The notes under the pieces were generated by a model. The model was given only the letters and a program-made list of their open reading frames with translations. It made no database searches and had not been told where the DNA came from. A stretch of DNA of 64,000 nucleotides. It comes from Mytilus trossulus (lineage: Eukaryota). Numbering within the stretch: position 1 is the stretch's first letter; the number at the start of each line of letters is the position of its first letter. Positions 31,305-63,326 of this stretch are shown here, in pieces. The stretch lies in NCBI RefSeq assembly GCF_036588685.1, contig NC_086373.1, positions 91,388,001 to 91,452,000 on the forward strand. Direction: 5' to 3'. Both the position numbers and the translations under genes were made by a program.

Positions 31305-33538
31305 ATGGGGTAAGATTTATTTTTCTGTATTGGTTTTAGTTGGTTTGTTTGTCTGATTTGCGAGTACTGTTTAAAAAAGTCGTACTATGTTTTCGTGAAG
31401 TCCTTTTTGTCGAGCATGCGAACTTTATTTCACGAAAGCGAGATATAGCTATCACAGAAGTTGTTCATGCCAACATATAGTTATCCAGAGCAAAACTGCG
31501 AAAATATTTATTTTAAAGTATGAATCTTAACGAATAAATGGACTTAGTTTTTTTTAACATTCATATTTTGTAGCATTCATATTCATTCTGACGTTACAGT
31601 TTAGCTGTCATCAATCACTTTGTCAAACTTTATGAAATTAAATGAAATGTAGACAAAAGCATTGTGAATATCCAAAACATAGTACCCATAACAAAAGTTT
31701 GAAATTATTTATTTTTCATTTTTTAATATTTAAATGATAAAAGAATTTAGTTTTGTTCATAATTAACAAGTTGATAAGCATTAGTTTAAGTTTGTTACAC
31801 ATCAAATATTTTGTCAAAAAACTTTTTTTTAATGATTAAGATATAATGTCTTGTGCAAAGTTTTGAAAATGTATTTTTATTTTCGGTATTTTTCTGATAG
31901 ATGGACTAATTAGTTTTTTACAGTTAACATTTACAGACAGTCTGGGATTACATAATTTTGAAATAAGTTTGCAAACATTTATGGATTGTTATGAGATTTA
32001 AACAGACGCAAATTTTCGAGACAAAGAAATAACATGTAAAGAAACAGATTGATTTATATTTACAATTCTGTTTTTGACTGATAAATGAACTCACGTTTTA
32101 AGTTAGCACAACAAGTTTACAATGACAGCAGCAATTGAAGGTGAGACGCAGGCTGTGTCTCACCTTCAAACGCTGCTGTCATTGTAAGCCAGGGTTTCGC
32201 AGAATCCCTTGCGATGTTTTGTATCACATAATGAGTAACGAAGTTATTACATATTTCTTTTCCAGGAAGAGTAAAAAGTACAAAGTAAAAAAAATATGGA
32301 CTAGGAATGATTACGCTCTCAGACACAGTAACCAACAACGATCTCCATCTGAGGAAACAGTCAGGGTCTTAACAATGCAAACACGTAACGTACCAGCAAA
32401 ACCATATAGTTTTATGAAGATACCTGAAAATAATGAAATTACAAAATATCCCAAAGATGATGAAATTACAAAATATCCCGAAGATGATAAAATTACAAAA
32501 TATCCCGAAATTGACGAATCTGACAAAAAAGAAAAAAATACAGAAAGCTACGATGGTCTTAATAAACAAAAATCCAAACCTGTGGCATGTCTTGAATGTG
32601 TTAAACCGATTCAGGTTTTCACAAGTGAAGAAATTAAAAGAGGGGATCACATCAAATTCCATGGACGAATATATGATCACCATGCAATTGTAATCGATGT
32701 AAAACCAAATGAAAAAGATCATAAAGTAGACTTAGAATTGGTACATGCATCAAACACGACAGCTGGTGCAATATATAATTTTATAAGACCGTTTGGTAAC
32801 AAAGCCAAACTGTTAACAGAAACGAAACGAATAAATCTAAAGAAGATAAAAGTCATGGTGTATAAATATTCGGATACAATTGAACATTTTCTGCCCAAAG
32901 AGATTGTTACTAGAGCAGTCACAACAACATCCTACCCTGATTTCAAATACAACTTGCTAAATAATAACTGTGAGCATTTTACAACATGGTGCGTTACAGG
33001 CGTGATTCTTAGCTTACAAATTCGAAAGATACGAATGGTGAAGGGACTTTTTGCAAATCAAGGATTTCAAGGTATTGGCAACGAAGCTCTTCGAAATAAA
33101 ATCGAATTTGATAAAGGAATGCTCTGTAAACCGTGTTTCGATAGAAATGAAAAAATATTGAAGGTCACGAAGCAAAAGATCAGATCAAAAAGTGACGTAG
33201 AGATTGGTGATATAATAACATACAACTATTATAGATGTTGCCATTCTGCTGTCGTACTTGAAATTGTCAAATCACATGACAAATCACTACAGTGTAAAAT
33301 AGCTCATTATGCATTTCGTGGTTTACATAGGGATAAAAAGATTCTGGAGGAAACATTCAGAATTCCGTTTGATGGAAGTATAGAAGTTACTGATTTCACG
33401 ACTGATTATACTGTCTATGCTCCCGACGAGGTGGTAGAAAGGGCCCGTAGAAAGCTGGGCGAAAAACGTTATGATCATTTTTCAAATGATTCAAGTCATT
33501 TCGCGCGATGGTGTAAACTTAAATTGTACAGAAATTGA
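31305..33538 (+). CDS. Tandem double LRAT/PLAAT-like (permuted NlpC/P60) domain protein, copy 1; join(31305..31309,32266..33538), 425 aa, starts MGKSKKYKVKK
   Basis: Long ORF with GDHI..YDHHAIV..VHAS..YNLLNNNCEHFTTWCVTG (domain 1) and GDII..CCHSAVV..IAHY..VVERARRKLGEKRY..NDSSHFARWC (domain 2). ATGGG|GTAAGA donor at 31310 and polypyrimidine TTTCTTTTCCAG acceptor at 32265 join in frame. Confidence 0.9.
32423..32509 (+). repeat. 27-bp coding tandem repeat (P[EK][ND][ND][EK]ITKY x3) in copy 1 linker
   Basis: Units at 32423, 32450 and 32477. Copy 4 has a single unit (PEDDEITEY). Confidence 0.9.
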
Positions 33539-35281
33539 AATTAATCGTTATAGCCAATATTGTTTCATGGAATCTTTAGTAAACATATGACTTGATATGT
33601 ATTAATGACATGTCTTTGTTTTGTAATTTTGTTACATATCTAATTGTCAACAGAAAATCAATCCTGATGCATTGGCGGAAGAACTTTAACCAGTTTGTCA
33701 ATGGTTGACTTATCAAAATAAGAAATGAATTTTAGTGTTAGAAATTAAAATACACATACAAAATTACTACATATTGTCCTTTAAGATCTGTGAAAGTATA
33801 TTTTACGAACTGCTGAACAGTTTGTTGTACCTGATTTTGTGTGAATCTTTTATTCATTCAAATGAATTTAATACAAATGTCAATTCATGACACGTGCTGT
33901 TAAAGGTATAACATACATATATGATATGACGCAATCCTTTGGTCCAGAACTTTGTCTATATCAAATCTCAAACTCAATCTTAAAACCTGAATTAATCATC
34001 TGGAACGGGATATTTGTTTAAAGAAAATATAGAAAAATTGATTGGCAGTGTCAATTCAAAAAAATAAATCTATAAATAATAGTTTTGGATAACAAAATCA
34101 CAAAATTTAAGATAAATCTTTCTGTGTTAAGACTTGAAGTTAAATTAGTCTTATTAATCTATTTTAAATAAATCATGGGAGCCAAATATTTGTTAAACAG
34201 CGATGTTTAAATTTTAAAAAACTACAAGATAAGAGAAGCATCTATTAACATTTTGGTTTTCAACGATAAAACATAAAACATAAAAATAAAACATAATGTA
34301 TTGTTTGCTATTTTGAGTTAATCCACAGCATCACTCTGGATTCCTCCACCAATAAAAGACTGGCCGCCACGAAATAGACCGAAAGCGGGGCTAAAAGTGG
34401 CGTTACAAACACCTAAAATCAAATTAAATCAGAACTACTCAGTCGGCTGCAAATTTCAAAATGACGGTCCTAATATTTGAACAACTTCATACAAGAAATC
34501 TGCCATAATTATGATATGCGTTCATGAAGTCCTGGCATTTTTTGTATCGAAAGTTACTTATGTTTTTTTCATTTGTTAATGCTTACTTCTTTGACTAAAT
34601 CTCAGATGAACTTGGTTAATAGAAATTAATTGTATTAAATTCAACAATCAATAGAGCTATGTGTATTTAATATTCCTCATATATATTTATGAATTTATGG
34701 GAATATTTTATATTTGATATAATAGAAAGCACATCTTGAAGTTTTATGGAAAACAAAATATATAGAAATTGCCTAAAAAAGAATCTGTTGGAATTCCATA
34801 TCATTATAATTTAATATGCCACAATCGAATTAAATTTTCCACGAATTTGACCTACAGAATTAGACTTATCCCAAGGTTTATTTACCATGAGCAACACGAC
34901 GGGTGCCACGTTTGGAGAAGGATATAAGTAACCTTCCGAAGCACATGAGATCACCCCAGTGTTTGGTGGTGTTCGTGTTGCTCATTATAGTTTCCATGCT
35001 GTGTTTTGTATACTTTTGTTTGTCAATTAGACATCTTACCACTAAGATTTAAACGAAACGGGTGTAATCAATTATAGGCAACCATATATATTTATGCTTT
35101 ATAGAAGACATAGGATCTGTACTCTTATATATATATATATTTATGCATTGTTATACCCAGAGTGTTCTTGCATTCATTTGTAATGTATTCCTGTCATGTA
35201 ATGTTGTCATGTTAGCGGTACATTTAACATTGCCATAAAGCGCGAGTAATGGCTAGCAACAAAACCAGGTTCAATCCACCA

Positions 35282-36187
35282 TTTTTGTCGAGCCTGCGAC
35301 TTTTGTCTCTGATGCTCAAACAGTTTTCACTTGACCTCGACGTCATTTCATGGATCAGAGAACAAGGTTTAGCTTTAGTGGTCAAGTCTATATCTCAGAT
35401 ATTCTGAGCAATAGAATTAAAATTGAGAATGGAAATGTGGAATGTGTCAAAGAGACAACAACCCGACCATAGAAAAATCAACAGCAGAAGGCCACCAACA
35501 GGTCTTCAATATAGCGAGAAATTCCCGCACCCGGAGGCGTCCTTCAGCTGGCACTTAACAAATATATACTAGTTCAGTGATAATGAACGCCATACTAATT
35601 TCCAAATTGTACACAAGAAACTAAAATTGAAATAATACAAGACTAACAAAAACCAGAGGCTCCTGACATGGGACAGGCGCAAACTAGTATATTTGGTGTA
35701 TGGAAGGACTGTTAGGTCCAACTGGTAGGTGTCATCTGACCTTGACCTCATTTTGATGGTTCAGTGATTATAGTTAAGTTTTTGTGTTTTGGTCTGTTTT
35801 TCTTATACTGAATGCAAAGGTCAACTTTATTTGGTATATTTAATGATTGTTAGGTGTACATGTCTAGCTGGCAGGTATCATCAGATGACCTCGTTTTCAT
35901 GGTTCATTGGTTAAGTTAAGTTTTTGTTCTTATGTCTTTTTTCTAATACTATAAGCAATAGGCCAACTATTTTTTGGTGTATGGAAATATTTTATGATGT
36001 ACATGTCAGTCTCACAGGTTTTGTTTGACCTTGATCTCATTTCATGATTCTATGGCCGGTCAATGATTAGTTTTCTAGGTTGAGTCTGTTCCTTAGAAAC
36101 TATAAGCAATAGGTCAACTATATTTAGTGTATTGAATGATTGTATGGTGTACATGTATTTCTTGTTTGGCTTCAGCGTGTGCACTTT
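35282..36187. mobile_element. HINE-like repeat with a nested dispersed repeat (35418-35682)
   Basis: TTTTTGTCGAGCCTGCGACTTTT start and repeated GACCTTGACCTCATTTT / AAGCAATAGGTCAACTAT units. Related pieces at about 31404-31450, 41900-42330 and 48525-48560. Confidence 0.55.
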
Positions 36188-36985
36188 TGCTCTGAACATG
36201 TCCTGTACTAAGTCAGAATTATGTCAGTTGGTTTCTAATAGTTCGCCCAATCGATTTGTGACTTTTGACCAGCGGTAGACAACTGTTGCCTTTATTTATA
36301 TATGATGAGTTGCAGTTGTCGATAGTCCATAAAACAGTCTTAGCCCAAAATACGCACGTGCTCATACTTAGTTACTATTTCATGCATTGTTTATTGTTGT
36401 ATGAGGAAGTTTTGCGGCACTGGAAAATAAAATTGAAGAATTTTTTATGAGTTAAAAAAAAAAACCAATCAGCTAATTATGTGAAGGTGTATAAAAAAAA
36501 GTCTTACTCAAAAGCCTGTAATTTCGGTAATAATCAATTGATCTTTTGGAACCTTTATCTTATAGAAAGCCAATACCGCGTAAAGAACATGTGATCCATT
36601 TGCGTGGTTGACTCCAAGTAGAGCAAAAGTAGCAGTTATCATGATCATATTGCTACAGTAAATATATCAAACAACAACCAATACAAAAACTATATAAAGA
36701 AGCGTATCAACTACTATGTAAGTGAATCAAGATTTTAAGAAGTGTGGAGTTGACCGCTTCACGTTCTATACCAAACTGTTAAATCAATAGACAAACAATA
36801 GATGTGTAATATCGAAAAAATCATACATCGGATCACCTTTCCCAAATGAATTAAATGCTTTATAAAATGTTTAAAAATCCTATTTACCAATATAACTGAT
36901 TGACGAAGGTAAATGTTTAATTCAAGATGAGACATGCACAAGAAGACAAGTAGATTATTTAAGTGTTCAACAGTTCCAGAAAAAA

Positions 36986-38513
36986 ATGGGGTAAGGCTCA
37001 TCTTTCTTTAGTGATATTGGCCCTTTTTTATCAGTTTTTGTACTGTTCTTGCGTACTTTTTAATTTTCGTTTAATAATTGTATTAAGAAAGTTTGTTTAA
37101 TAACGTGTTTTTGATGAAACAACATCAAATATCTGTTCACAAAGAAACTGTTTACTGCTTAATGATGTGGGTCGTGTTTGCTTCTTATTTAAAATTAGAG
37201 TAATAGAATTTCTTTTCTTTTCCAGGAAGAGCATGAAGAAGAAATGTAAAAGAATATGGATCAGACATGATTATTCTCTCAATCAGAACGATCTACAAAG
37301 ATCTCCATCTGAAGAGTCAGTGAAAGTTTTAACAATGCATCAATACATTAAACCAGAAAAGCCTGGTTTTGCAAAGATTACAGAAGAGGATGAAATAACA
37401 GAAGATCCAGAAATTGACGATTCCTGCAGAAAAGATAACAGACAGGAAAGTAATGATGATCTTGATAGTAGAAATAATCAAGAGACACAACCTGTTGCAT
37501 GTCTTGAATGTGTAAAGCCGATACAGGTTTTCAGAGGACAAGAAATACAAATAGGGGATCACATCAAATTTCATGGGAAAATATATGATCACCACGCAAT
37601 TGTATTAAAAGTAAAACCTTCAAAAGAAAATGATCATAAAGTAGTTGTAGAACTGGTGCATGCATCAAACACCACAGCTGGTGCAATTTATTGCTGCTTA
37701 CAGCCATTTAGTAGCATTGCAAAACTGTTAAGTGAAACAAAACAAATAAATTTAAAAAAGATGAAAGTAATGGTTTATAAATATTCGAACACAGTCAAAC
37801 ATTTTTCACCAGAAAGGATAGTCAAAAGGGCAGTCGAAAAGAAATCAGAACCTGGTTTTAAATACGACGCGCTAAATAATAATTGCGAGCATTTTGCAAC
37901 ATGGTGCGTTACAGGAGAGAGTCTTAGCTTACAAGTTCGAAAGATAAGAATGGTAAGGTTTCTTTTTGCAAATCAAGGATTTCAAGGTATCAGAGACGAA
38001 ATTCTCCGAAATAAAATCGAATATGAAAATGAGATGCTCTGTAAACCGTGTTTTGAAAGAAATGAAAAACTATTGAGTATTGCGAAACAACCGATCAAAT
38101 CTAAAGGTGACGTTAAGATTGGTGATATTATAACATACACTTATTACGGATGTTTGCATTCTGCTGTAGTGCTAGACATTGATTCACACGACATGTCACT
38201 ACAGTGCAAAATAGCCCATTATGCATTCCGTGTTTTACACAGACACAGAAAAATACGAGAGGAATCGCTAAGAATTCCGCTTGATGGAAGTGTGAAAGTT
38301 ACGGATTACTCCAATAACGGTTATAGTGTATACGATCCAAAGGAAGTGGTTGATAGAGCAAGAAGTAGGCTTGGAGAAACACGATATGTATATTTTTCAA
38401 ATGATTCAAGTCATTATGCTCGTTGGTGTAAACTTAAATTGTATAGAAAAAGAATGATTATTACTGCAAAATCAAAATTGTTAAATGTAACATTAGAAAA
38501 CAACCCGTCTTAA
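36986..38513 (+). CDS. Tandem double LRAT/PLAAT-like domain protein, copy 2; join(36986..36990,37226..38513), 430 aa, starts MGKSMKKKCKR
   Basis: Same motifs (YDHHAIV, VHAS, NNNCEHFATWC; CLHSAVV, IAHY, NDSSHYARWC). ATGGG|GTAAGG donor and TTTTCTTTTCCAG acceptor join in frame. Confidence 0.9.
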
Positions 38514-39212
38514 TATAATTTAATTCTTGCTTAATTTGTTGCAACTATCATAGAAACATTGAAATGACAAAATAGGTCAATCACGGAATTTACAATAGAT
38601 ATAGGAAGATGTGGTGTGAGTGCCAATGAGACAACTCTCCATCCAAATAACAATTTAAAAAGTAAACCATTATAGGTTAAAGTACGGCCTTCAACACGGA
38701 GCCTTGGCTCACACCGAATAACAAGCTATAAAGGGCCCCAAAATTACTAGTGTAAAACCATTCAAACGGGAAAAACAACGGTCTAATTTAAGACTATTTA
38801 AGGCGCTTTAACTCCAGTTAAAAAAAAACCACAAAAAGATAGATAAAAACATTGATACTTTAAACTGATCTAACTCTAAAATTCATTATATCTGATTATC
38901 TGTCTATAATTTGTTCATTCTAATGATATTTAATATACACATGCAAATAATAAGACATGATCTTAAATGACTTAATGGTGATATCATGACTTTACATTAA
39001 AGCTTTATTCAAATTAGATGTTCAACTTATATATTCATTTGTAACCTTGTGCAAATTTTCCAATTATAATTTCCACAGCTCATTTACTTTGTGTATAACC
39101 TACCAAATAAGACTTATTACTTAAATTGTTTATACATGAACAAAATCGCATTGTCTTATGTGGAACAGGAGCTGAGTACTACTCCGGAGCACCTGAGATG
39201 TCTATGTTGTCG

Positions 39213-39650
39213 TTTTATGCCCCACCTACGATAATTGAGGGGCATTATGTTTTCTGGTCTGTGGCTCCGTTCGTTCGTTCGTCCCGCTTCAGGTTAAAGT
39301 TTTTGGTCAAGGTAGTTTTTGATGAAGCTGAAGTTCAATCAACTTGACACTTAGTACACTAGTTGCTTATGTTATGATCTTTCTAATTTAAAGCAAAATT
39401 AGACTTTTGACCCCAATTTCACGGTCCATTGAACATTTAAAATGAAAGTGGGAGTTTCAGGTTAAAGTTTTTGGTCAATGTAGTTTTTGATGAAATTGCA
39501 GTCAATCAACTTAAAACTTAGTACTAATTTTTCTTATAGTATAATCTTTCTAATTTTAATGCCAAATCAGATTTGTACCCTATTTCACGGTCCATGGAAC
39601 ATGTCAAATGATTGAATGTGGCATCCGTGTACTTTGGACACATTCTTGTT
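39213..39650. mobile_element. HINE-like element with about 170-bp internal duplication
   Basis: Terminal hairpin ATGCCCC..GGGGCAT, (CGTT)n microsatellite, TTCAGGTTAAAGTTTTTGGTCAA repeated, ends CATTCTTGTT. Confidence 0.7.
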
Positions 39651-40028
39651 TATTTTTTTGTTTGTCTTTTTTTAATGTCAAAGCAGGAGTTTGAATAAAC
39701 CTTTTGTATCTTTTAAACTTTTACACTTAATGAATAAGACAAAAAAAAAACACAAAAAATTAAATACACACACAATCAGAGAGAAATTTTTTAGGAAGAC
39801 TAAGTACAATTCTGAATAAAGTTTTCAAAGTAATATTGGGTAAGATTTTTCTGCGAGTGACAGTCTGTGCTTAAAATTTTGTCTTGATCGGTGCTGGTAA
39901 TAACGAATATTGTGAATAATCCATGGGCTTCTACTCTGATTCAGTATACATTAAAAAAAATTAAAATGTGTGCAAGTTCATGTTTTGGTTCAGTGCTGGT
40001 GGGTCTGTATACGATCATAGTCATTTAA

Positions 40029-40607
40029 GGTTCATGTGGACCCTATGGCTAAAATGGCCGTATTTTCACCTCAAAATTTTCTCTGAGTACAGGCAAACCT
40101 GTGCATCTGGAAAAGTTTTAAGGCATAGCATGCCCTAGATAAATAGAATTCAAATGCATTGTATGATTTAGAAAATTCATAACTTAACTGGATTTTGCCG
40201 TACACTTTTTTTCGTCTCTGCAGAAGATGATAAAATTAACAAACAGTTGCGTTTACCTTGATATGGTCCACTCAGGTACACAGTTTAAATAACGAATTAT
40301 TGTCAGGTATCTATTGTCCATCTAATATCCATGTCAATTTAAAATGCTCAGTTTAATTTTTACCTGTGGGAATTTCTCAAACCTGTTTCCCAACTTAGTT
40401 TATTTTGGCACCTTCTGGAGAAATGAAAAAAAGTGCACGGAACAATCCTGGTAAGTTTTTATTTTTATAAAACATAAAACATACTAAAAATACATTTATC
40501 TAGGGCATGCTATGGCTGAATTTTTTTACAGATGCGCAGGTTTGTCTGTACTCAGTAAATTTTGAGGTGAAAATACGGCCATTTTAGCCATAGGGTCCAC
40601 ATGAACC
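40029..40607. mobile_element. Kolobok-like MITE, long imperfect TIRs, TTAA TSD
   Basis: TTAA|GGTTCATGTGGACCCTATGGCTAAAATGGCCGTATTTTCACCTCAAAATTT...AAATTTTGAGGTGAAAATACGGCCATTTTAGCCATAGGGTCCACATGAACC|TTAA. GG..CC termini favour Kolobok over piggyBac. Confidence 0.85.
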
Positions 40608-41152
40608 TTAAAAAAGAAGTGGAGTATGATTTGAATAAAACGGTGCAGATTCAATAAAATTGGGCAAATACTTGTATTCAATCGTTGTAACTCATATTTC
40701 AACTATAGACATTTCTTTGACTGTAATAAGCGTTTCTAAATAATGGTTACTTCATATCACTTGAAACGGCAACATCCTCAATTCAATAGGAGAAGAAATG
40801 TGAACATTATAAGTAACCATATTTCATAACCAACAAGCATAAACCATATTGTATGAAAAGCTACAAAAAAATGTGTGAGGAAGGATGATTTATCTCCTTG
40901 ACAACTGATTAATAACGCCTTCAACACCAAAAAACAAATACATCTTAATGTCTGACCGAACTGAACTGTACATAATTGTTTTTAATTTCGATAAAAGGAA
41001 TATTTAGCATTTTTTTTCTTTAAAAAATCTACAAAAGAACTGCATTTCAATATGCTTTTTTTTAACATTTTTAATGACATTAACACAAAAAAAATCTTTT
41101 TTTACAGATATCCTTCAAGAAACGTAGGCATAATGTCAAGATTTTCAGTATA

Positions 41153-41428
41153 TAAAATTGAGAATGGAAATGGAGAATGTATCAAAGAGACAACAACCCG
41201 ACCATAGAAAAAACAACAGCGGAAGGTCACCAACAGGTCTTCAACGTAACGAGAAATTCCTTCAGCTGTCCCCTAAACAAATATATACTAGTTCAGTGAT
41301 AATGAACGCCATACTAATTTCCAAATTGTACACAAGAAACTAAAATTAAAATAATACACAAAAAAACAAGACCAGAGGCTCCTGGCTTAGGACAGGCGCA
41401 AAAATGCGGCGGGGTTAAACATGTTTAT
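41153..41428 (+). mobile_element. Dispersed repeat family A (AAAATTGAGAATGGAAATGG..TCAAAGAGACAACAACCCGACC); copies also at 35418-35682(+), 48755-49003(-), 30285-30432(-), 8790-8935(-)
   Basis: Multiple similar copies on both strands within the window. Confidence 0.75.
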
Positions 41429-46028: not shown

Positions 46029-47280
46029 TAATAACAAAAACAGTTATGTCAATCACACAAATACGTAACCCTACTGATCGAGGCATTTATTATCTTAATG
46101 AGAGAGAAGTAAAAGTTGATAAAGAAAGTGATTGATAATGATGTTTTTCTCTCGAAAAGTTTACTTTTTACGGCTTAGAATGTTTGTTGATTTTTTTAAG
46201 AAGGGAAGGACCAGTTACCATCAGCACCGAAATCAATACAATTCTTCATCAAGTGTATTGATAGTGCTCATGTTTTTACAAACGCTCGGTAAGTAGTCTA
46301 ATTGTATAGGTCCCATTCGTGGTGAAAAGGAGGTTGGTTGTAGATACAACATTATGAACATATTCGATATTATCTGTGAAAGGAACTAAACTCTTAAACA
46401 ACAGTTTGAATGACAGATAAAAAGTTCAAGCGTTATACATCATGTGTCGGTGAAACTTTCTTACGAAGTGTGGATTATTGATTTTTATATAAAAAGATAC
46501 AAATCAATTTGGAGATTACTGAATATTTCTTTAATCCTTAAAGCGTTGTCCTTGTTACGCAGAAGTTGTCTTTCTTCGTTTACCTCGGCAAATGTGGGTT
46601 ACACTAAATGCCGAATCGATGGCAGGATATTAATGAAAGGACAACGATATGACCAACTGAAAATGCTTTATCCTTTAATGTCTAAAAACAATCAAAAAAA
46701 TCTCAAATTTCATCCTTTAAAACACATAAATGATAGGGAAAAATAAGAAAACAAATATTCACAGCTTGACCTTGATGAAGTGAAATGATATTTTGGTAGG
46801 GAATGGATTTGCACATACCTTCCATGGATAATGTCCAAGAAATATTACGTTAACTGGAAAACTTGCCACACAAATTAGCAAGTTTTATATAAGATATTTA
46901 TGGGGTTTACAATGGTCGGACTGAAATCCAGCAACAAAAATGAAAAGAACTTACGCGTTTGATTAAAATCATAAGATTATTAATATATCAGTGTCACGAC
47001 AGCCAAAATAGGAAGCGAATTGGCAGAGTCTGTAGTGCATTTAATTGAAGTTAGTTATGGGGTCAGTTCAAAATGACGCTGCTAGTAGTATATTAACTTG
47101 AATAATGTAAGATGTAAAAACAGAATAAAAACAAGTCAATGCTCTCTCAACAGATACATTTGTTCAGCAAACAAAGCTAGATGCTTCGTTTTTAACTCAT
47201 GTTAATTTCCTGCAAACGAAAGTGTTATTAAATGCAGCTACAACTTTTGGCTATGATATACTATTGAATTTGAATCTAAA

Positions 47281-48035
47281 ATCAAATAACACTTGCCTCT
47301 AGCTTTGTCTATTGAGGTCCCTAGTAATATCAAATAACATATGCCTCTAGCTTTGTCTATTGAGGTCCCTAGTAATATCAAATAACATATGCCTGTAGCT
47401 TTGTCTATTGAGGTCCCTAGTAAGATCAAATAACACATGCCTCTAGCTTTGTCTATTGAGACCCCTAGTAAGCTCAAATAACACATGCCTCTAGCTTTGT
47501 CTATTGACCCCCCTAGTAAGATCAAATAACACATGCCTCTAGCTTGTCTATTGAGATCCCTAGTAATATCAAATAACATATGCCTCTACCTTTGTCTATT
47601 GAGACCCCTAGTAAGATCATATAACATATGCCTCTAGCTTTGTCTATTGAACCCCCTAGTAAGATCAAATAACACATGCCTCTAGCTTTGTCTATTGAGA
47701 TCCCTAGTAAGATCAAATAACACATGCCTTTAGCTTTGTCTATTGAGACCCCTAATAAGATCAAATAATACATGCCTCTAACTTTGTCTATTGAAACCCT
47801 TAGTTAGATCAAATAACACATGCCCATAACTTCGTCTATTGAGACCCCTAGTAAGATCAAATAACACATGCCTCTAGCTTTGTCTATTGAGACCCATAGT
47901 AAGATCAAATAACACATGCCTATAACTTTGTCTATTGAGACAAATAACACATGCCTCTAGCTTTGTCTATTGAGACCCATAGTTAGATCAAATAACATCT
48001 GCCTATAACTTTGTCTATTGAGACCCCTAGTTAGG
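47281..48035. repeat. 48-bp minisatellite, about 16 units
   Basis: Unit ATCAAATAACACATGCCTCTAGCTTTGTCTATTGAGACCCCTAGTAAG, contiguous with no spacers. Confidence 0.95.
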
Positions 48036-50225: not shown

Positions 50226-50415
50226 AGATTAATAGCCAAAACACATGTGAAATATCGAAAAACAAATATGGATTTTCACGTTTTACAACATGTATTTAAA
50301 TATTCCAAAGTATAATTTTACCAATTCACCTGATTAACTGTTCAAGGTGTGTTTAATTCAATATTAGACATGTACGAGCCAACATGGTTATTTAAGTATA
50401 GCAAAGTTTTTAAAA

Positions 50416-51880
50416 ATGAGGTAAGATCAATTTGTCTTTATTGTATCAGCATTAATTTCTAAAGTTTATTTGTTTGTGAATTGAATGAAACATCGTCGAA
50501 TACTTTATCATATTTTACTGAAAAGGGAATGTTTCGTGGTAGCTTCTTTAATACGATAAGAGTTTATTGGAATGTTTTGCTCTTTTTTTCAGGAAAAGTA
50601 AAAGTTACAGTTGCAACAAAAAATTAGAGTTTAAAACTGATTTCAATCTCAGGCAGACTTTTCTTCAAAGATCTCCATCTGACGATACCGTAAAAGATTT
50701 AACAACGCAACGGCAAACAAGTATAGAAACACCTAGTTTCAGGGAGATAGTTGAAGAAGATGAAATCGAAAAAGCTCCAGAAATTGACAAAATAGAAAAT
50801 ATAATAGAAGTTCATGATGAATCTGATGGTAATAAAACATCAAAGCCAAAACCCGTTGCATGCCTTGAATGTGTAAAACCCATACAGGTTTTTAAAAGAG
50901 ATGAAATAAAAAGAGGGGATCATATCAAATTCCATGGACGTATATATGATCACCATGCAATAGTAGTGGATATAATACATTCAAATAAGAAAGATCATAA
51001 AGTAACCGTAGAAATTGTACATGCATCAAACACGACAGTTGGTGCCATGTATTGCTGCTTACGGCCATTTAGTAGCATAGCAAAACTGTTACGTGAAACG
51101 AAACAAATAAATTTGAAAAAGAATAAAGTGATGGTATATAAATATTCAGACACAATTGAACATTTTTCGCCCGAAAGGATTGTTGAAAGGGCAAACACAG
51201 AGAGATCAAACCCGGGTTTCAAATACAACTTGCTAAATAATAACTGCGAGCATTTCGCAACACACTGCGTTACAGGAGAGAGTCTCAGCTTGCAAATAGG
51301 CAAAATAAGAATGATAAAGCGGCTATTTGTAAATCAAGGATTTCAAGGTATAAGTGATGAAGTTCTTCGAAACAAAATCTTACATGAAAAAGGAATGCTC
51401 TGTACACCGTGTTTCGAGAGAAATACACATTTATTAAATGTATCGAAAAAGTCGATAAAATCAAAAGTTGACTTGAACATCGGAGATATAATTACATACA
51501 AATATTACAGATGCTGGCATTCTGCTGTCGTACTTGAAATCAAACCACACGCTAGTTCACTGCAGTGTAAAATAGCTCATTACGCATTTCGTGGTTTGCA
51601 TAAACATAGAAAAATTCGAGAGGAAACGTTAAGAATTCCGTTCGATGGAAGTGTTAAAGTAACTGACTTTTCCAACACTAAGTATACTGTCTACGATCCA
51701 GAAGAGGTGATGAAAAGGGCTCGAAGAAAGCTTGGCGAAAAGCGTTATGTACATTTTTCAAATGATTCAAGTCATTTTGCCCGTTGGTGTAAACTTGAAT
51801 TATACAGAAATCGACTTATCAGTAAACATAAAGGACACACACAAAACACTTCGAATGTTATCAACCTTAAGTTGACTTGA
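50416..51880 (+). CDS. Tandem double LRAT/PLAAT-like domain protein, copy 3; join(50416..50420,50593..51880), 430 aa, starts MRKSKSYSCNKK
   Basis: Same motifs (NNNCEHFATHC; CWHSAVV; NDSSHFARWC). ATGAG|GTAAGA donor and TCTTTTTTTCAG acceptor join in frame. Confidence 0.9.
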
Positions 51881-52574: not shown

Positions 52575-52785
52575 TATCACTAGCCTGTCAACACAGGTTG
52601 TGAGTTCACATCCCTCACGTAATACTCCAATCTTAATTGACTAGAATTGTAAGTTTTCCTAACGTAGGGTTGGTGGTTTTATCAAGGCACTCATGCTTCC
52701 TCCACCAATACAAACTGATCACCACGAAAAGTACTGAAATTGCTGAAAGTTGCGTCAAAAACCAAACAATAATTCAATCAATCAT
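52575..52785 (+). mobile_element. Degenerate tRNA-derived SINE (related 3' parts at about 34335-34430 and 17815-17920)
   Basis: GGTTGTGAGTTC.. B-box-like segment, TTCCTCCACCAATA.AA.ACTG..C.CCACGA body, (CAAT)n tail. Confidence 0.55.
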
Positions 52786-53586
52786 CCATACCGATATAAA
52801 AATGTATGGTAAGAAAATGTTTAAAGCTATTGTTATGAAATACTTTTTTAAACTGACTGTATTTAATTCGTATAGGAAAAAAAAGGTAAAGCGGCAATTC
52901 AAAAAAGAGGGAATTCATATGCCGGTTTAACTATTTTTGCAGTATATTATCATATTTTCGAAACAACATTATAATTTGTCTGCTAGCTCCTGTATTCAAA
53001 GGATATTGAATGGATCTAAATCTTCTTCCAAAAGTTTAAAAAGTTCTCTTTTTATTACGTATTTTGAAAATTGTGTGCATATATAAACCTATTTTGACAT
53101 GAGGCAGCTACGACGTTCTGTACAATACTTAGTTATATGTAAAAAAAAAAAAAAAGACAGAAAAAAAAGATACTATATTCTGACTTTAAAACTGATTGTA
53201 TCTGATTATGTGTCAAATATTATTCCATTCGAATTATTTTAATATACAATACAAATAATGAGACGTGATTTTAAATGATTTTTTTTTTCAAAAAGGTATC
53301 AAACATAGACAAGATATCATGACTTTACGTCAAAACAATATCCGAATAAGATTATAATTATATTGATTTTATCAATTTCAAACCGTGGGAAATAAATTGT
53401 TATTACAAAAGTCTCGTCAATTTCTCATAGAGTATGACCGACCAAATTAGACTTATCACCGAATGTGTACTCACACGTGCAACACAACGGGTGTCACATA
53501 TGGAGTAGAATCCCATTACTCCTCCGGAGCTCCTGAGATAACTGTGTTGAATTATTTGCCATTCGTTGTTTTTTGATTGTTTTTCC

Positions 53587-55037
53587 TTTTTAGCTCACCT
53601 GGCCAGAAGGTCAAGTGATCTTTTCTCATCACTTGGCGTCCGTCGTCCGTCGTCGTCGTTCTGCGTCCTGCGTCCGTCGTCGTTAACTTTTACAAAAATC
53701 TTCTCCTCTGAAACTACTGGGCCAAATTAAACCAAACTTGGCCACAATCATCATTGATATATCTAGTTTAAAATTTGTGTTTTGTTACCCCGCCAACCAA
53801 CCGAGATGGCCGCCATGGCTAAAAATAGAACATAGGGGTAACATGCAGTTTTTGGCTTATTACTCAAAAACCAAAGCATTGAGAGCAAATCTGACATGGG
53901 GTAAATTTGTTTATCTGGTCAAGATCTATCTGCCCCTGAAATTTTTAGATGAATCAGACAACCCATTGTTGGGTTGCTGCCCTAAATTGGTAATGTTAAG
54001 GAAATTTTACTGTTTTTGGTTATTATCTTGAATATTATTATAGATGGAGATAAACTGTAAAGAGCAATAATGTTCAGCAAAGTAAGATTTACAAATAAGT
54101 CAACATGATCAGTTGACCCTTTTAGGAGTTATTGCCCTTTATAGTCAATGTTTAACCTTTTTTCGTAAATCTCCATGATCTTTTACAAAAATCTTCTCCT
54201 TTGAAACTACCGGGCCAAATTAATCCAAACTTGGCCACAATCATCATTGATGTATCTAGTTTAAAATTTGTGTTTTGTTACCCGGCCAACCAACCAAGAT
54301 GACCGCCATGGCTAAAAATAGAACATAGGTGTAAAATGCAGTTTTTGGCTTATAACTCAAAAACCAAAACATTTAGAGCAAATCTGACATGAATAAAATT
54401 GTTTATCTGGTGAAGATCTATCTGCCCTGTAATTTTTAAATGAATCAGACAACCCATTGTTGGGTTGCTGCCCCTAAATTGGTAATTTTAAGGAAATTTT
54501 ACTTTTTTTTGGTTATTATCTTGAATATTATTATAGATGGAGATAAACTGTAAACAGCAATAATGTTCAGCAAGGTAAGATTTACAAATAAAAGGACCCG
54601 GCATACTAACCAAGATGGCTGCCACGGCTAAAAATAGACGTTGGAGTAAAATGCGGTTTTTGGCTTATAACTCAATAACCAAAGCATTTAAAGCAAATCT
54701 GACAGAGGGTTAAATTGTTTATCAGGTCAAGATCTATCAGCCCTGACATTTTCAGATGAATCTGACAACCTGTTGCTAGGTTGATGCCCTTGAATTGATA
54801 ATTTTAAGGAAATTTTTGCTGTTTTGGGTATTTATTTTGAATATTATTATAGATAGAGATAAGCTGTTAACAGAAAAAAATGTTCAACAAAGTAAGATCA
54901 TCAAATAAGTCAGCATGACCAAAATGGTCAATTGACCCCCTAAGGAAATATAGCCCTTTTTAGTCAATTTTTTAATTTTTTTGTAAAATTTGTAAATTTT
55001 CACTTACATTTCCACTGAAGCTATTGGGCCAAGTTCA
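53587..55037. mobile_element. Inverted copy of the HINE family at 3602-4872 with about 3 internal units
   Basis: TTTTTAGCTCACCTGGCC..GGTCAAGTGA hairpin, (CGTC)n tract, about 490-bp repeats. Confidence 0.8.
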
Positions 55038-56764
55038 TCAGACCTTCAAAAAGGAACATGTAAAATAGTACAAGACCCGGTCTTTTTTTGTTATTTTGTG
55101 GTTTTTTTCTTATCTAAATTGGATTAAAATTGCATTAAGATATAACATAGATTAAGAAGAAAATGTCTTTGGCGCAAAACTTTAAACTTCAGTGCACAAA
55201 AATGTCGTATAGGTTATATGCTGTTGCAGTAAGTGGTCAGTACCTTAACAAAATCTCATCGCAATAAATGAATGATTTGAATATTTTTAATTGGCCTTTC
55301 ATCCACTTGTGTGGCTCTCCTGGTATACATATTTTTTTCAATTTAGTAGCACAGTTAACAGTCATGAAGTAATTCCTCAAACAATGGAAAATATCTACAA
55401 AAGAACAGGATTTCATTTTAAGGACATTTTCCAGAGATTTAGTTACACCAGCATTTCTTATATATCAACAGCTAAGCAAGACAATTTAAAGACTAAAACT
55501 ACAATAAAAACAAATCCCATGCAGCCAACTGTTGAACACTTTGCATATTAATGACGATCCAAGTACACAAGGAAAGACACGGGGACAACATTCCAAATTC
55601 GTAAATTGTCAAGTGTTATTTAATATTGCTTTTAATACGTAAATTGGTAACTGTGTAATTCCAAAATGCTTAATTAATAAATTGTCAATTTCTTACTTGT
55701 AACTGTGCAATTCGTACATTCATGATATGTATATTTGTAATTCGTTGATTTTTCATTTTTTTATGGACCTCCCTTATTTAGTTTATCTTGGTATTTAGTA
55801 TTTGTCGTATACTTCTTTATACTCAATAACTGAAACCATTTATCAGGTTATTGTACACATATTCACTTCAAATTTGAGGTTTCACACATGCAGTTTTGAT
55901 CTCTGTCTTGAAAACTATTATCGAGAGACAGCAACTGTTTACAGCAATAACGATAACTAGCGTTTCAAGATATACACACACAAAAAAACGGCAAAAAATA
56001 CGAAAAGCAGTAATCGACTCCTCAAATAAAATATTTTCCTTACTACCAGCTATTGGATATAGAGCTTTTTAGTTAAATCAAATATTGAAACAAACACATC
56101 ATGTTGAACAAAATCTCGAAACATTATAACGTAATGTTAAAGCCGTATAACGAATTAGCAAATTATCATTACGACCAAAAGACACAGCAAATATGTTATC
56201 AAGGTCAATTCAGTATGTTGTTCAATCGTCAGCAAGAGTATGAACTCTTCATGAGTAGTACTGGAATGTCATTTCAATGACAGTTTGAGGAACAATCAGA
56301 GATTGATTATATATATCATTACAAATACAACCTGCCCGAAACAATTTACGGATATGAAATTAGTAGTTTGCATTGTATATCTTTTTACACTATTCTTCAA
56401 TAGATTTGGGTGATCAATTTTCAAATAACTGCATGAACTACAAGTTTAATAACAAACACAGTTATGTCTATTGCACAAATACGTAATCCTACTGGTCGAA
56501 AGGCAGTAACTGTCACTGTTTGTCAGTATTAATTATCTATCTTCTTAATGTGAGAAAATTAAAAGTCTATGATAAGGAAAGTGGTTACCAAAAATACTGT
56601 AATAGTTCAAGTGGTCAGTGTTTAATTTTTTGGGAAATTTACTTTATAGCAGTTTTTGTAAGACGTGAAAACCAATTACCGTCATTCTATATTAATTGAA
56701 GTTAGATGGCTTTAAGTTAGGTCTTTATTGTTTTCAAAGGCATCATAATTATCATTTAATACAC

Positions 56765-56945
56765 AAGGCGCGCGTTTCGTCTACATAAGACTCCATCAGT
56801 GAGCTCAGATCAAGTAACCCTCAGATCAAAATAGTTATTAAGTACAAAGTTGAAGAGCATTGAGGATTAAAAATTCCAAAAGTTTTTGTGCCAAATACGG
56901 ATAAGGTAATCTCTACCTGGGATAAAAACTTCCTTAGTATTTCGA
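56765..56945 (-). mobile_element. Retrozyme-family fragment with disrupted hammerhead core
   Basis: Homologous to 9505-9645. The core reads CTGATGGA (1-nt insertion) on the minus strand. Confidence 0.65.
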
Positions 56946-59900
56946 AAAAAAATTATACTTAACCTATTCTTACAAAATGAGGAGTATTAACTTTTTATAT
57001 AAAAAGTCATCAATAAATTTGGATATTTATAAATGAATAATTTTTATCGTAGAGTGTTGTCCTGATAATACAGGAGTTGTCTTTCTTTGCTTATCTCGGC
57101 AAACGTGGGGTTATACTTATTGCTGAATCAATATAACCGGACCAAATGAAAATGCTAATAACTTTTCATGTCTCAAAATATTTATCTCATATATGAAATA
57201 TAATGAGATTGCATTGTTTAATACATAAATATATGGAGAAAAAACGAAAGCAAATATTCAAAGCTTGGCCTTGATGAGGTGAAATGATATTTTGTAGGCG
57301 ATTGTTTTATCATTTGCACATCACTCCCATGGAGCACACTGCTCTTTCGTCTGCCGAAGAAATATTACATTACATACAAAACTAGACACGACCTATTATG
57401 TTTCATATAAGGAGATTTATGGTTTTAATCGGTGGGACTGAAATCCAGCAACAAAATGAAAAGTTTTTTGGCGTTCGATTTAGATCATTATATTTTTATT
57501 TTTTAGATGATAAGACTATAACATTATTGTCACAACTAAGAAACAGAAGACGGAATTATCGTTACGACAATAGGAATAAAACAATTGTCATCAGTGAAAC
57601 GGACGGTCTATAACGGTCAACCTTCTCAGGATGACGTTTGTTTTGAACAGAGGTATACTACTGTTGCCTTTATTTGTAAGACTTTTGAAGGAGTAACTTC
57701 AACAATTAGAATCGATGAATCAAACGTTTCCTTGAAAGCAAAAACTCATTTTAGGAAACGTAAACTCATGAATACCGTATCAACTGTGAGATAAATACTC
57801 AGTATGCAGTCGCTGCTTGTTTGGACCTTGCATACACTCCTTTCTACTATCTGTTCTTGAAATTTAATATCAGCCAACACACTTCTGCCTTCGTGTTTTG
57901 GCAAAAAAAACATACTGTTTAGTCGTCTATAAAAGGCCCCGACATGAAAAATATGGGACAGTTCAATTGAGAAAACCAAAGGCCTAATTCATAACAAAAT
58001 CAAAACAAATATGACGGACATGAAACATCGAAAACCACTTAACTACAGGCTCTTGGCAAAGGACATGCACATAAATAAAGAATAATGCGGGATTTCAAAC
58101 TAACATGTATATTTAACATATGAAAAGCAGGTATAGCTAACCTGATTGACCCGAATTTTTAAACTTTTACAAAAAAATAAAATTAATGTTCTACAGTTTA
58201 TTTGAATAATTTCTGCATTTATCATCCTGTGAATATTTGATATTTGAAACTTGAAACTAGACATATGTAAACAACCAATCAACCAATCAATTTATGATAA
58301 AATCATCCCCAAATTTTAAGCAGATGAAATATCTAATGTAATGAAATATTTAAATGAGAAAGAATATTTCTTAAACTTATCACAAAAAAACTGTTGTACA
58401 AGTGAGAGGTTAAGCTAGTCAGGGTTTAACCAACTATAGTATTTGGAAACTGCCTGTTACAAGTGGAATTTGACATTTGTTTTTATTTCGTTACATTGGA
58501 TGATAGTGTTTGATTTGATCAGTTTGTATGGGCGTCTCCCCCCTTTTTCAAATTTAATATTTATCTTATAATTGAAACATAACCTTAATACACTATAACT
58601 CTTTTTTTAAAATATCAAACAATAATTTATAATAATGAAATTGACAAAATTTCAAAACCAGATATTAGTATGTTGAGGAAGACAAATTATTAAATGTCTG
58701 ACAGTAGGAAATAGAAAAACTCTTCTTGAAAGATTGCATCATTTCCGTTCTTTCATGTGAAAAAGTTATTTTCCCAAATTAAATAAATAATAACATTTGT
58801 CAAAATCTATTCCTGTTTGAAACAATAACAAGAGCAACATAAAGAATGTGTTTCCTTTTGTACCTACAAAAAGTTCGTTGTTATTATTTTATGTACATGT
58901 TAAAAATTGTCGATTTAAAAAAACACAATAATATTTGACCTTGAGATTATAAGATCCAATTGAGGAAATTCATTTGAACTTTAAAGTATGTTACATTTAT
59001 TTTAAAACACAATTCAAACTGTAGTACGTTTAAAGATTTAATATATCCGTTTCAGTAATGTAAATTATGTATAAATATACAACAGTAGTATACCGCTGTA
59101 CGAAAGTTATAAATCGATTGAGAGAAAAAACAAATCCAGGTTGCATTGGTTCATATCATAACATTTGTTGTTTTCTGTTTAGTGTGAAGTTTGTATCAAT
59201 TATGGTTCAATATAATTTATATGACAATTAAAGACAAAAGAAAGACAGCTTATTTTTATCTCACACTTTTTGTGTTTATTTTTTATATATGTGTTTGGTT
59301 TTTTTTTATAGTGAGTAAAATTATAACACAATGGCTCTTCCCATTTTTTTTAAATTTTTACCTATGTTTTTGTTTTTTTTGTTCATACATCCTTGTCAAC
59401 ATAATGAAATTTTAACCGAACGGCTATACAAGTGGGTGTTTTAAATGGCGATAAAATCAAGTTAAAACCACAATAATCTATATAAGAAAATTCCTCTACC
59501 AAGTGAGGAATATGACAGTTGTTATCCATTTGTTTGAGCTTTTGGTTTTGCGTTTTGAGTAGGGACTTTTTTAATAGGACGTATTAATTTTTGAAACAGG
59601 ATAACTACACACACCTAAGACAAATGAACATCGTCTGTATTGATGTTCTTCATAAAAAAAACATGCAGTGAGCACAGCTTTTTGTTTAAATACACGTCCA
59701 CTAGACATACCAAATACAAAATGTATGTTAAAAATAATAAAATCAGAAATATTTTTATTGTCTGTTATAAAAGTTTTTTTCTTATTTCTTTTTTAATTAC
59801 AAAGTATTAGTCGCTTCCTTTCAGAATATACTTGTTCTTACGTTGGTAATCAAAGTTTGACTAATCATTGCATTTTCTTCAAAATGTGATTATTTCTATA

Positions 59901-61470
59901 AAGAGTCGAGAAATCAAACCTAAACTACGAGAAAAGACATTGTCAAACATATTTTTTTTTTCATACTGTCAAAACTATTCTAAATGAAAGTTATGCTTTA
60001 AAAGAAGAATGCACTATTCTATTATCATTGATTTGAATATGTCAGGCTCTTTCCTTTAATGCATTGAAAAGAATGCTATATCACATATACCAAAAACGTA
60101 TCGGTATTATAAACGTGATATTTGATTAATGAAAAAAATTAACACATACGAACATGAACATTCTTCGCCTGCTTAGGTTTCGATTTAAATCATAATGAAA
60201 ACGAAACTCAGTGTATACCCTGCATTCACCTTAGACAATTATTATGTTTTAATAATTCAAAAACATTTGTTATTTTAGTACATTTTATTTATTTTCTTTT
60301 CAAAGAAAGCAATACCGAATCATGCTTGTGTTTTATCTAAAAAACGAATTGATTATCATGATCATGATCATGCTGATATGAAAAAAATGTGCAAATAAAA
60401 AACAGCAACAGAACACTCACACCACATATTTGACACGAGGAGGAACGTGTAAATAACACAGCTCCCTGAGTACCGTCCCTTGGTGTCTGTTGCAGAATGG
60501 AAACATACACTATTCTAAATATCTGTTCCTGCAGTATATTTATTTGCTGTGAATATACATGAACTTTTTACGTTTGTATATGTTTTTCTGCATCAGATAC
60601 GAGGAGGATTGTTAGACCTTTTAAGATCAGAATCCTACAGCATCGTCCCTTGGTGTCTGTTGCAGCTAAACAATCATTTGTATTTATACATTTCCAGCAA
60701 ATATAATAAAATCAAGTGAGAAAAAAAATTAATAATAAAAGAATAAAAAAATAAGTAAATAAATTTAAAAAAAAGTTTGCCACATCTCTAGAGTAGCAAC
60801 TCTTGAATACTTTTTTATTTAACAAACAATACCTATATGACTTTATTTCATTAGATTATTTTACAATGGTATTTAAACTCATGAAGTTGTATCAATTATA
60901 TATGTTATGTGTATATGCCCCCCCCCCCCCCCCTTGGGGACCTAATTTGAAAAATAAAATTTATCTTATCTTATCTTATCTTGTCTTATATGTAGATCAA
61001 GACTGATATAACTTTTAATGCGACCAAGATAACTGAACGTCTTATGCATGGCTTTGAACAGGTTTTTATACCTGGCGTTTACTTTTTGAGAGTATTACCT
61101 GACTATACAATCTTCTTTACTCCACCATTATCATTGAGGAAATGTCTGTACCAAGTCCGGAATATGACAGTTGTTTTGTGTGTTTGATCTTTTGATTTTG
61201 TCATTTGAAAAGGTACTTTCCGTTTTGAATTTTTCACATGGATAGGCTTTATTACTTTTTACAAGCTTCTGGCATATACAACACATTTATTTATAGAGCA
61301 CCAGGCTAACAATAAATGTATAATATCAACAAAAACAAGGACATAACTGCACCTTTTTTACACCTGTAAACACATTAAAATGTTTTAACTATATAACAAT
61401 TTACCTGGTAACTGACGTTATTCAAGTTGGGACATTTACTAGTAGACACGAAGACTATTTAAGTATAAAA

Positions 61471-63326
61471 ATGTGGTAAGATTCAATTTTCTCTTATCGT
61501 TTTTTTTTCTTTTTTCTTGTTGGTGTATTTGTCTGTTTTGTGACTGCTGTATTAAAAAGTATCGAATAGCATAAATATAAAGATCAAATATTTGGACGTA
61601 GTCAGAAAGAATAAAAACAGAAAGTAGTACACATTTTAAACAAAATAGTTCATACGCATAGCGTGTTCCTTTGTCAATAAGTAAGGTATTTGGGAAACAA
61701 ATATTAAATGGAATCTTAAGGACTTAGGATCCCAGTGGAACACTTGAAAGTTTCTTTAGAATAATAATAAAACTATATGAAATACAATAGGAGGGCACAT
61801 TTGTTATTCAGATCAGAAGCACCTGTTTTTGTACTACCAAACTACTTGGAACATTTGCGCTCTAATATGCAATTGAAGATATTTTAAATTTTTCAGTCCA
61901 AGTCAGGATAATATATAGTTTTGACATGAAATGTCTGCTACTTTTTTTAAATTCAGGCAAAAAAACCGTTATTGCTCGCAGTTGTGGAATTTATCAGAGA
62001 AAGGAATTGGCTATGAAAAATTCGTGGTTTTATTTCTAAGATCAATTTAATTACGTAAAAAGAGATTGGGGTTACTGCATTTTTCTTTTTTTTAGGAAGA
62101 GTATAAAGAACAAAAGGAACAAATTCAAAACAATATGGACTGGGAATGATTATGAAATTAGACACAGTAACCAACAACGATCTCCATCTGAAGGAACGGT
62201 CAAAGTTTTAACACTGCAACGTACCGTATTAGAAGAACCTGAAGATGATGAAATTACAGAATATCCCGAAATTGAGGAATCTAACAAAATAGAAGAAACT
62301 AGAGATAAGTACGATGATCTTGATGGTAGAAAAACACAAAAGACAAAACCTGTGGCATGCCTTGAATGTGTGAAACCGATTCAGGTTTTCACAAGTGACG
62401 AAATAAAAATAGGAGATCACGTCAAATTCCATGGACGAATATATGATCACCATGCAATTGTTGTAGATGTTAAATCTTCGAATGAAAAAGATCATAAAGT
62501 AGACTTAGAATTGGTACATGCATCAAACACGACAGCTGGTGCAATATATAATTGTATAAAACCGTTTGGTAACAAAGCTAAATTGTTGAGAGAAACAAAA
62601 CGAATAAATTTAAAGAAGATAAAAGTTATGGTGTATAAATATTCGGATACTATTGAACATTTTTCGCCAAAAGAGATTGTCAGTAGAGCAGTCACAACGA
62701 AATCCAATCCTGATTTCAAATACAACTTGCTACATAATAACTGTGAGCATTTTACAACATGGTGCGTTACAGGACAGGGTCTCAGCTTACAAATCCGAAA
62801 GATACGAATGGTAAAGGGACTTTTTGCAAATCAAGGATTTCAAGGTATCGGTGACGAAGTTCTTCGAAATAAAATCGAATGTGAAAAGGGAATGCTATGT
62901 GCACTGTGTTTCGAGAGAAATCGAAAATTGTTAAATGTCCCAAAACAACCAATCAAATCAAAAAAGGATGTGGAGATTGGAGATATAATTACATATACGT
63001 ACTACAGATGTTGGCATACTGCCGTCGTGCTTGAAATCATAGCACACGACAAATCACTGCAGTGTAAAATAGCTCATTATGCATTTCGTGGTTTACATAG
63101 AGATAGAAAAATTAGACAGGAAACATTAAGAATTCCGTTAGATGGTAGTGTAAAAGTAACTGACTTCTCTAACACTGATTATACTGTCTATGATCCAGAA
63201 GAAGTGGTTGAAAGGGCTCGAAGTAAGCTTGGCGAAAAACGTTATGATCATTTTTCGAACGATTCAAGTCATTTTGCTCGATGGTGTAAACTTAAATTGT
63301 ACAGAAAGCGATATTCAATGGAATAA
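61471..63326 (+). CDS. Tandem double LRAT/PLAAT-like domain protein, copy 4; join(61471..61475,62096..63326), 411 aa, starts MWKSIKNKRNK
   Basis: The frame is open from the acceptor at 62095 (TTTTTTTAG|G AAG AGT ATA...) into the ORF-track ORF 62352..63326, encoding the same N-terminal QQRSPSE motif as copy 1. ATGTG|GTAAGA donor at 61476. Motifs HNNCEHFTTWC and NDSSHFARWC. Confidence 0.88.

Follow-up and report, generated by a model that had tools for sequence, protein, structure and literature searches.

What do tandem paralogous genes on a Mytilus trossulus chromosome encode, and why does one domain of each protein carry Ser where its relatives carry a catalytic Cys? The window, the whole stretch of 64,000 nucleotides analysed here (G000:C1:91388001-91452000, or 91.39-91.45 Mb), contains no N and holds four of these genes. 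Each encoded protein opens with a polybasic segment, continues with an acidic, weakly constrained N-terminal stretch, and then carries two LRAT/PLAAT-fold domains joined by helices. Domain 1 has the Cys of the permuted NlpC/P60 active site, and domain 2 has Ser in its place. We put at about 0.5 the probability that domain 2 does no catalysis and is kept under constraint as a module for recognizing lipids or membranes through its old pocket. What is new, and well supported, is a real, conserved architecture that couples a Cys-type LRAT domain with a constrained Cys-to-Ser one. The proteins were already annotated individually (as uncharacterized) and are present across bivalves, so the finding is less exceptional than a preliminary description of the locus held.

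We number residues on the core of copy 4, in which residue 1 lies at window position 62352. Domain 1 covers residues 1-150, a helical linker 151-200, and domain 2 residues 201-316. The preliminary description assigned two permuted NlpC/P60 (LRAT) domains to each protein, and Pfam LRAT (PF04970) indeed matches twice in all four copies, with 77-89 bits. Domain 1 in isolation scores 63.1 bits, and domain 2, at 32.9 bits, also passes the gathering cut-off of 24.3 by itself. The active-site residues of domain 1 occur in the permuted order H33, H56, and then C131 within NNCEHF. Domain 2 keeps the same order of residues with H222, H242, and S305. An hhalign comparison of the two domains gives a probability of 99% (E 5e-18) and pairs H33 with H222, H56 with H242, C131 with S305, H133 with H307, and C138 with C312. 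The motifs reported earlier for both domains are all present, and the codons in copy 1 lie where they had been placed (Cys TGT at 32969-32971 and Ser TCA at 33491-33493). The segment FSNDSSH[FY]ARWCKL[KE]LYR, described as among the most invariant, is identical in the four copies except at the bracketed positions.

A CxxC pair stands ahead of each LRAT domain, at core residues 3-6 and, within the linker, 183-186 (window 62358-62369 and 62898-62909 on the + strand in copy 4). Both pairs are (nearly) invariant in the two-domain family. C138 and C312, located after the H-F-x-x-W helix, are conserved as well. From this pattern we suspect that the CxxC pairs and the conserved Cys residues form a structural metal (zinc) site.

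The 324-residue core was modeled with AlphaFold2 from an 82-sequence alignment (mean predicted local distance difference test score 88.9, predicted template modeling score 0.84). Both domains are predicted to take the PLAAT fold. The top Foldseek matches in the PDB are PLAAT3, PLAAT4, and HRASLS2, with borderline values for the whole model (E ~1e-3). VIA re-alignment placed domain 2 (205-317) on PLAAT4 and PLAAT3 with Z 11.2-11.4 and a root-mean-square deviation of 3.2-3.3 Å, and domain 1 (13-146) on HRASLS2 with Z 10.7. The model thus gives domain 2 the fold that had been supposed for it. A phmmer search of PDB sequences found PLAAT4 at E 0.14. In a complex prediction with domain 1, domain 2, and Zn as separate chains, the score was 0.06 (mark 0.34), which we take to count neither for nor against contact between the two domains. 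As a separate observation, model residues 4-181 (domain 1 and the linker helices) have as their best VIA match chain E7 of the Euglena gracilis respiratory supercomplex I+III2+IV (8iuf; Z 12.0, 151 residues aligned).

We assigned domains in 269 homologues using hidden Markov models built from the family alignment. The intact Cys-His-His site proposed for domain 1 of the window copies is borne out. Across the homologues, position 131 is Cys in 248 of 253 aligned copies, and the Glu132 that follows it is kept in 252 of 253. The third triad position, residue 56, is Glu in 123 copies and His in 82; either residue is ordinary at this position in NlpC/P60 enzymes. In domain 2, position 222 is His in 271 of 304 copies (89%) and position 242 is His in 286 of 304 (94%). 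Position 305 is Ser in 260 of 295 copies (88%), Cys in 19, and Ala in 9, and a nucleophile-capable residue (Ser, Cys, or Thr) occurs there in ~95%. Position 306, which aligns to Glu132 of domain 1, is variable. The catalytic Cys by which the LRAT family is recognized is therefore present in domain 1 (248/253) and replaced by Ser in domain 2 (260/295).

Selection was estimated by the Nei-Gojobori method, as the ratio of nonsynonymous to synonymous substitution rates (omega), across the four window copies and two further M. trossulus paralogues just downstream, six in all. Omega is 0.51 in the N-terminus, 0.27 in domain 1, 0.38 in the linker, and 0.15 in domain 2. Domain 2 is therefore the most constrained part of the protein. 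Pairwise synonymous divergence (dS) among the six is ~0.5-0.7, so the duplicates are old. The Ser codon is TCA, TCG, TCC, or TCT across paralogues on other chromosomes, with AGT in one divergent copy and ACT (Thr) in another. This variety points to selection on the hydroxyl residue itself. The predicted PLAAT fold, the His-His-Ser kept family-wide, the omega of 0.15, and the synonymous variation of the Ser codon together support a domain 2 that is constrained and not decayed, as the near-invariant segment had led the preliminary description to propose.

An exhaustive HMMER search recovered 1273 proteins at E <= 0.001, many of them multi-repeat. All named full-length relatives are from bivalves (five Mytilus species, Saccostrea, Crassostrea, Ostrea, Pinctada, Mya, Mercenaria, and Potamilus), where they are annotated only as uncharacterized or "LRAT domain-containing". 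Among the domain-typed homologues, the arrangement of one Cys-type domain followed by one Ser-type domain (d1-d2) was found 194 times. Others have a d1-(d2)n architecture, with one Cys domain and then two to eight Ser-type domains; the case of n = 8 is Potamilus streckersoni P0121. The two-domain form thus stands at one end of this series. M. trossulus itself encodes a d1-(d2)3 protein in a 917 amino acid open frame (L004:1010-3760, G000:C4:72260509-72263259), whose three Ser-type domains carry NRS/NKS motifs. A multi-repeat LRAT frame was also noted at C4:73.34 Mb. Proteins of the flatworm Macrostomum lignano have the reverse order, with Ser-type domains ahead of Cys-type.

In a quick maximum-likelihood tree, the six local copies fall within a Mytilus-only clade (Shimodaira-Hasegawa-like approximate likelihood ratio test, SH-aLRT, 100), in agreement with the lineage expansion suggested earlier. 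For each of copies 1, 2, and 3, the tree shows an orthologue from M. edulis or M. galloprovincialis; the partner of copy 5 is the European Nucleotide Archive protein P0005. The tree also contains separate expansions in Mya, Pinctada, and oysters. That mussels, oysters, pearl oysters, and clams have each expanded the family repeatedly and separately hints at a possible role in ecology or defence; the preliminary description had named defence or membrane remodelling as possible roles. The ESM Atlas yielded a mollusc cluster of the family itself and otherwise only generic LRAT clusters.

What we infer for these proteins is an activity for domain 1, a lipid substrate, a binding role for domain 2, and targeting to membranes. 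Judging from its complete permuted NlpC/P60 site (His33, His56 or Glu in many relatives, and Cys131), domain 1 is probably the catalytic unit. It would act as a thiol acyl-enzyme that hydrolyzes or transfers the fatty acyl chains of glycerophospholipids, as PLAAT and LRAT enzymes do. Domain 2 is an old internal duplicate: a single-base change (TGY to TCN) turned its nucleophile into Ser, and the Glu next to it disappeared. Its remnant pocket (His222, His242, and Ser305) and the helix that follows (HFARWCKL) are nevertheless under the strongest constraint in the protein. The old active-site pocket may hold a lipid or membrane ligand and in this way position domain 1. Because the d1-(d2)n series runs up to n = 8, we read domain 2 as a recognition module over a second active site, and we favour a domain 2 that is non-catalytic or at most weakly catalytic.

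The hydropathy of the four proteins bears on how they would reach a membrane. No hydrophobic anchor was found in any copy, as had been noted before: the top Kyte-Doolittle 19-residue mean is 0.86-1.13 and falls within the folded domains, and the C-termini are polar. Nor did the same scan reveal a signal peptide, or any further hydrophobic segment of the kind needed for secretion. Six or seven Lys/Arg residues occur among the first 20 residues of each copy. The proteins are presumably soluble and cytosolic. Since they have a polybasic start and no hydrophobic anchor, their approach to the membrane must be peripheral. Domain 2 and the polybasic N-terminus may stand in for the C-terminal membrane anchor of vertebrate PLAATs. 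N-myristoylation was considered as a general anchor and ruled out, given that residue 2 is G, G, R, and W in copies 1-4. An N-terminal RSPS motif was found in 19 of 204 two-domain homologues, all of them in the Mytilus clade.

In vertebrates, the LRAT-domain protein LRATD2/FAM84B functions in trafficking at vesicle membranes, and no enzymatic activity is described for it there (PMC8536394). It is a precedent for an LRAT domain that works at membranes without reported catalysis.

Two points weigh against the favoured reading. Both His residues and the Ser (or Cys/Thr) are jointly kept in ~90% of d2 copies, which is unusual for a dead domain and as expected of a working triad. In addition, the RNA status of the public runs that supply the spliced contigs described below was guessed, and their contigs are related alleles or paralogues (90-99% alike) and not from this individual.

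The first of these points leads to the alternative that survives best, in which domain 2 is a genuine serine-nucleophile enzyme (Ser305-His222-His242). In that case the chain would either be a dual-nucleophile enzyme or relay an acyl group from a Cys131 thioester to a Ser305 oxyester. We hold this as a tentative possibility. It would account for His-His-Ser kept at 89%, 94%, and 88%, for the residue at position 305 that is Ser, Cys, or Thr in ~95% of copies, and for an omega of 0.15 that is the lowest in the protein. It also fits the four TCN codons together with AGT and the Thr codon ACT, in which the hydroxyl itself looks selected, and the 19 copies with Cys at 305 indicate a pocket compatible with chemistry. 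However, the module is repeated up to eight times behind one Cys domain, as is typical of binding modules, and the Glu after Cys (252/253 in domain 1) is lost and variable in domain 2. Cys-to-Ser mutants of PLAAT and LRAT enzymes are also reported to be inactive. That domain 2 is a chemically active Ser-His-His LRAT fold, either a second serine acyl-hydrolase/acyltransferase or the acceptor in a Cys-to-Ser acyl relay, seems to us unlikely. If true, it would reveal a bivalve class of serine LRAT enzymes, up to eight per chain, without counterpart among the characterized PLAAT/LRAT proteins.

A different alternative concerns the substrate. Instead of lipid enzymes, the proteins may be thiol-dependent peptidases or amidases of the wider NlpC/P60-papain kind, such as PPPDE/DeSI-like isopeptidases or amidases of peptidoglycan; domain 2 would then bind a protein or glycan substrate. 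There are weak Pfam matches near the catalytic motifs to Peptidase_C97 (PPPDE; E 1.4e-4, 22 bits against a cut-off of 29) and Amidase_6, both below threshold. The family has also undergone lineage-specific tandem expansion, which is common among bivalve immune genes. We nevertheless regard this alternative as improbable: LRAT is the sole Pfam match above threshold, the best structural matches of both domains are PLAAT2/3/4, and the proteins have no signal peptide or hydrophobic segment as would suit a secreted cell-wall hydrolase.

By profile, residue order, and predicted fold, the mussel proteins belong to the LRAT family. PLAAT and LRAT enzymes have been studied as single-domain, membrane-anchored cysteine enzymes with roles in vitamin A storage, N-acyl-phosphatidylethanolamine synthesis, organelle degradation, and virus restriction. 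The mussel proteins share with vertebrate PLAAT1-5 (HRASLS) and LRAT the Pfam LRAT match, the permuted His...His...Cys order, NCEHF (in domain 1), and a predicted fold with Z 10.7-11.4 to PLAAT2/3/4. They differ in having two domains in the chain, the second with Ser for Cys, and in lacking the C-terminal (or N- and C-terminal) hydrophobic anchor of the PLAAT1-4/LRAT subgroup, outside which they fall. The N-terminus that is polybasic and then acidic and the invariant CxxC before each domain also set them apart, and sequence identity to the PLAATs is ~17-25%.

A second group for comparison is LRATD1/LRATD2 (FAM84A/B), which are also soluble LRAT-domain proteins without a transmembrane anchor, are membrane-associated, and have no reported enzymatic activity (PMC8536394). 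Mussel domain 2 resembles them in having no Cys. In contrast, LRATD proteins have a single, Cys-less LRAT domain, a proline-rich region, and an N-terminal myristoylation site, whereas the Cys-less mussel domain is fused behind an intact Cys domain. The mussel proteins fall outside the LRATD/FAM84 subgroup, with two domains of which one has Cys, Gly2 in two of the four copies, and no proline-rich region seen. FAM84A/B have been described as uncharacterized, and invertebrates as holding many LRAT-like genes (PMC5133064).

The multi-repeat LRAT proteins of bivalves and Macrostomum, all unannotated, have the same d1 and d2 types, with a single Cys domain together with Ser-type domains. They differ from the two-domain proteins by more d2 copies, no CxxC before the d2 repeats, and N-R/K/T-S instead of N-D-S; Macrostomum differs further by placing d2 before d1. 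The picornavirus 2A H-box/NC protein (Aichivirus A 2A) has an LRAT-like fold with Z 6.6-7.8 to both mussel domains. It is single-domain, much more distant, and belongs to another biological setting.

Searches of 8.1 million PubMed Central papers and of bioRxiv turned up no description of the paired-LRAT bivalve family, functional or otherwise, in line with the earlier statement that none was known. The family offers a natural experiment: an intact Cys domain is permanently tied to one or more Cys-to-Ser copies, and these are under tighter constraint than the enzyme domain. Knowing what the Ser domain does would settle whether the LRAT pocket is able to read lipids or to work as a serine enzyme, and could illuminate the unexplained LRATD/FAM84 proteins of vertebrates. 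For annotation, the gain is a defined d1-(d2)n architecture for hundreds of proteins labeled "uncharacterized".

The window is AT-rich (G+C ~32%) and has four long open reading frames (ORFs) on the + strand, at 32135-33538, 37167-38513, 50567-51880, and 62352-63326. Each belongs to an intact two-exon gene, also on the + strand. The coding part of exon 1 is 5 nt (ATG and two bases), followed by a GTAAG donor, and sits within a conserved 5' region; an AG acceptor directly precedes exon 2 in all four copies. In copy 1, exon 1 (ATG GG) is at 31305..31309, supported by a spliced contig joint, and exon 2 at 32266..33538 completes the coding sequence of a 425 amino acid protein, NCBI LOC134711156 (P0004). 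Copy 2 has exon 1 (ATG GG) at 36986..36990 and exon 2 at 37226..38513; it encodes 430 amino acids, with the Cys codon at 37884 and the Ser codon at 38406. Copy 3, also of 430 amino acids, has exon 1 (ATG AG) at 50416..50420, exon 2 at 50593..51880, the Cys codon at 51245, and the Ser codon at 51767. In copy 4, exon 1 (ATG TG) is at 61471..61475 and exon 2 at 62096..63326; the 411 amino acid protein is NCBI LOC134704682 (P0001), and its Cys and Ser codons are at 62742 and 63264.

We used the joined exon 1 and exon 2 models for hydropathy and for comparison with NCBI, and the exon-2-encoded sequence, which leaves out the two exon-1 residues, as the query in protein searches. The rebuilt spliced models of copies 1 and 4 match P0004 and P0001 at every residue; the copy 4 translation is 100% identical to "uncharacterized protein LOC134704682 [Mytilus trossulus]". 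Copies 2-4 align end to end with copy 1 at 67-85% identity. A tblastn search of the window with the NCBI models found exactly these four places and no others. The ORFs, the full-length alignment, and the NCBI identity thus bear out the four intact paralogues that had been claimed.

Transcription and splicing are supported by contigs from public sequencing runs. Contigs that align to copy 1 cover the exons and not the intron. In one contig, from run X1, 31308/9 is connected directly to 32265/6 and the intron has GT..AG ends, and a second run has the same kind of joint with a "TGG" second codon typical of a paralogue. The public runs found for RNA evidence were small-share holders. The contigs are good evidence of splicing in the genus and are not a measure of expression.

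The array does not end with the window. Two more intact paralogues lie just downstream, for a total of six genes: copy 5 at G000:C1:91460545-91461795 (L001:1046-2296; placed at C1:91460824) and copy 6 at G000:C1:91467248-91468510 (L001:7749-9011; placed at C1:91467548), which is NCBI LOC134686693 (P0009). The earlier count of four is correct for the window and too low for the array. The same chromosome carries a near-identical inverted copy of the whole array at C1:80351959-80404558 (L002, L003), at a distance of 11 Mb. Its identity to the window is 97-98.5% and extends to non-coding DNA, and an in-frame TAG interrupts its copy-1 homologue between the two domains. The inverted array is either a haplotig put in the wrong place or an inverted segmental duplication of very recent date that carries a null allele. 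The inverted array and its TAG imply that some copies are dispensable or that the assembly was duplicated, but the reading of these genes as recent, redundant, or decaying duplicates, or as an annotation or assembly artefact, with a drifting Ser domain, is very improbable and is contradicted by a dS of 0.5-0.7 with omega of 0.15-0.27 in the folded domains and by the orthologues of window copies in M. edulis or M. galloprovincialis, as well as by the intact state of all four window copies and an architecture kept across Mytilida, Ostreida, Pinctada, Mya, Mercenaria, and Potamilus.

Elsewhere in the M. trossulus genome, another dozen or so paralogues with both domains at full length lie on C2, C5, C7, C9, C10, and C14. 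With about 20 further loci in this genome and the spread across bivalves, the family is not special to the locus. Two divergent paralogues of 320-322 amino acids were noted among other loci, L015 (G000:C9:19112250-19113350) and L016 (G000:C10:62576500-62577650). L015 encodes its domain-2 Ser by AGT. In L016, domain 1 carries Ser at the Cys position (SNSEHF), and the Ser position of domain 2 is Thr (ACT).

Copy 1 contains a 27-bp in-frame tandem repeat at 32436-32509 (2.7 copies, 95% matches) that is absent from the other copies. It encodes the EITKYP(E/K)DD units in the acidic N-terminal stretch of copy 1. An Rfam scan of the window gave no RNA family match, and no ORF longer than 135 amino acids is present in its first 31 kb. 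The DNA between the genes and upstream of them contains non-coding tandem arrays, at 47277-48034, 1342-1828, 24979-25539, 26534-26789, and 54280-54898. Their units include a 48-bp satellite (~14 copies) and repeats of 168 bp, 162 bp, 23 bp (11 copies), and 316 bp.

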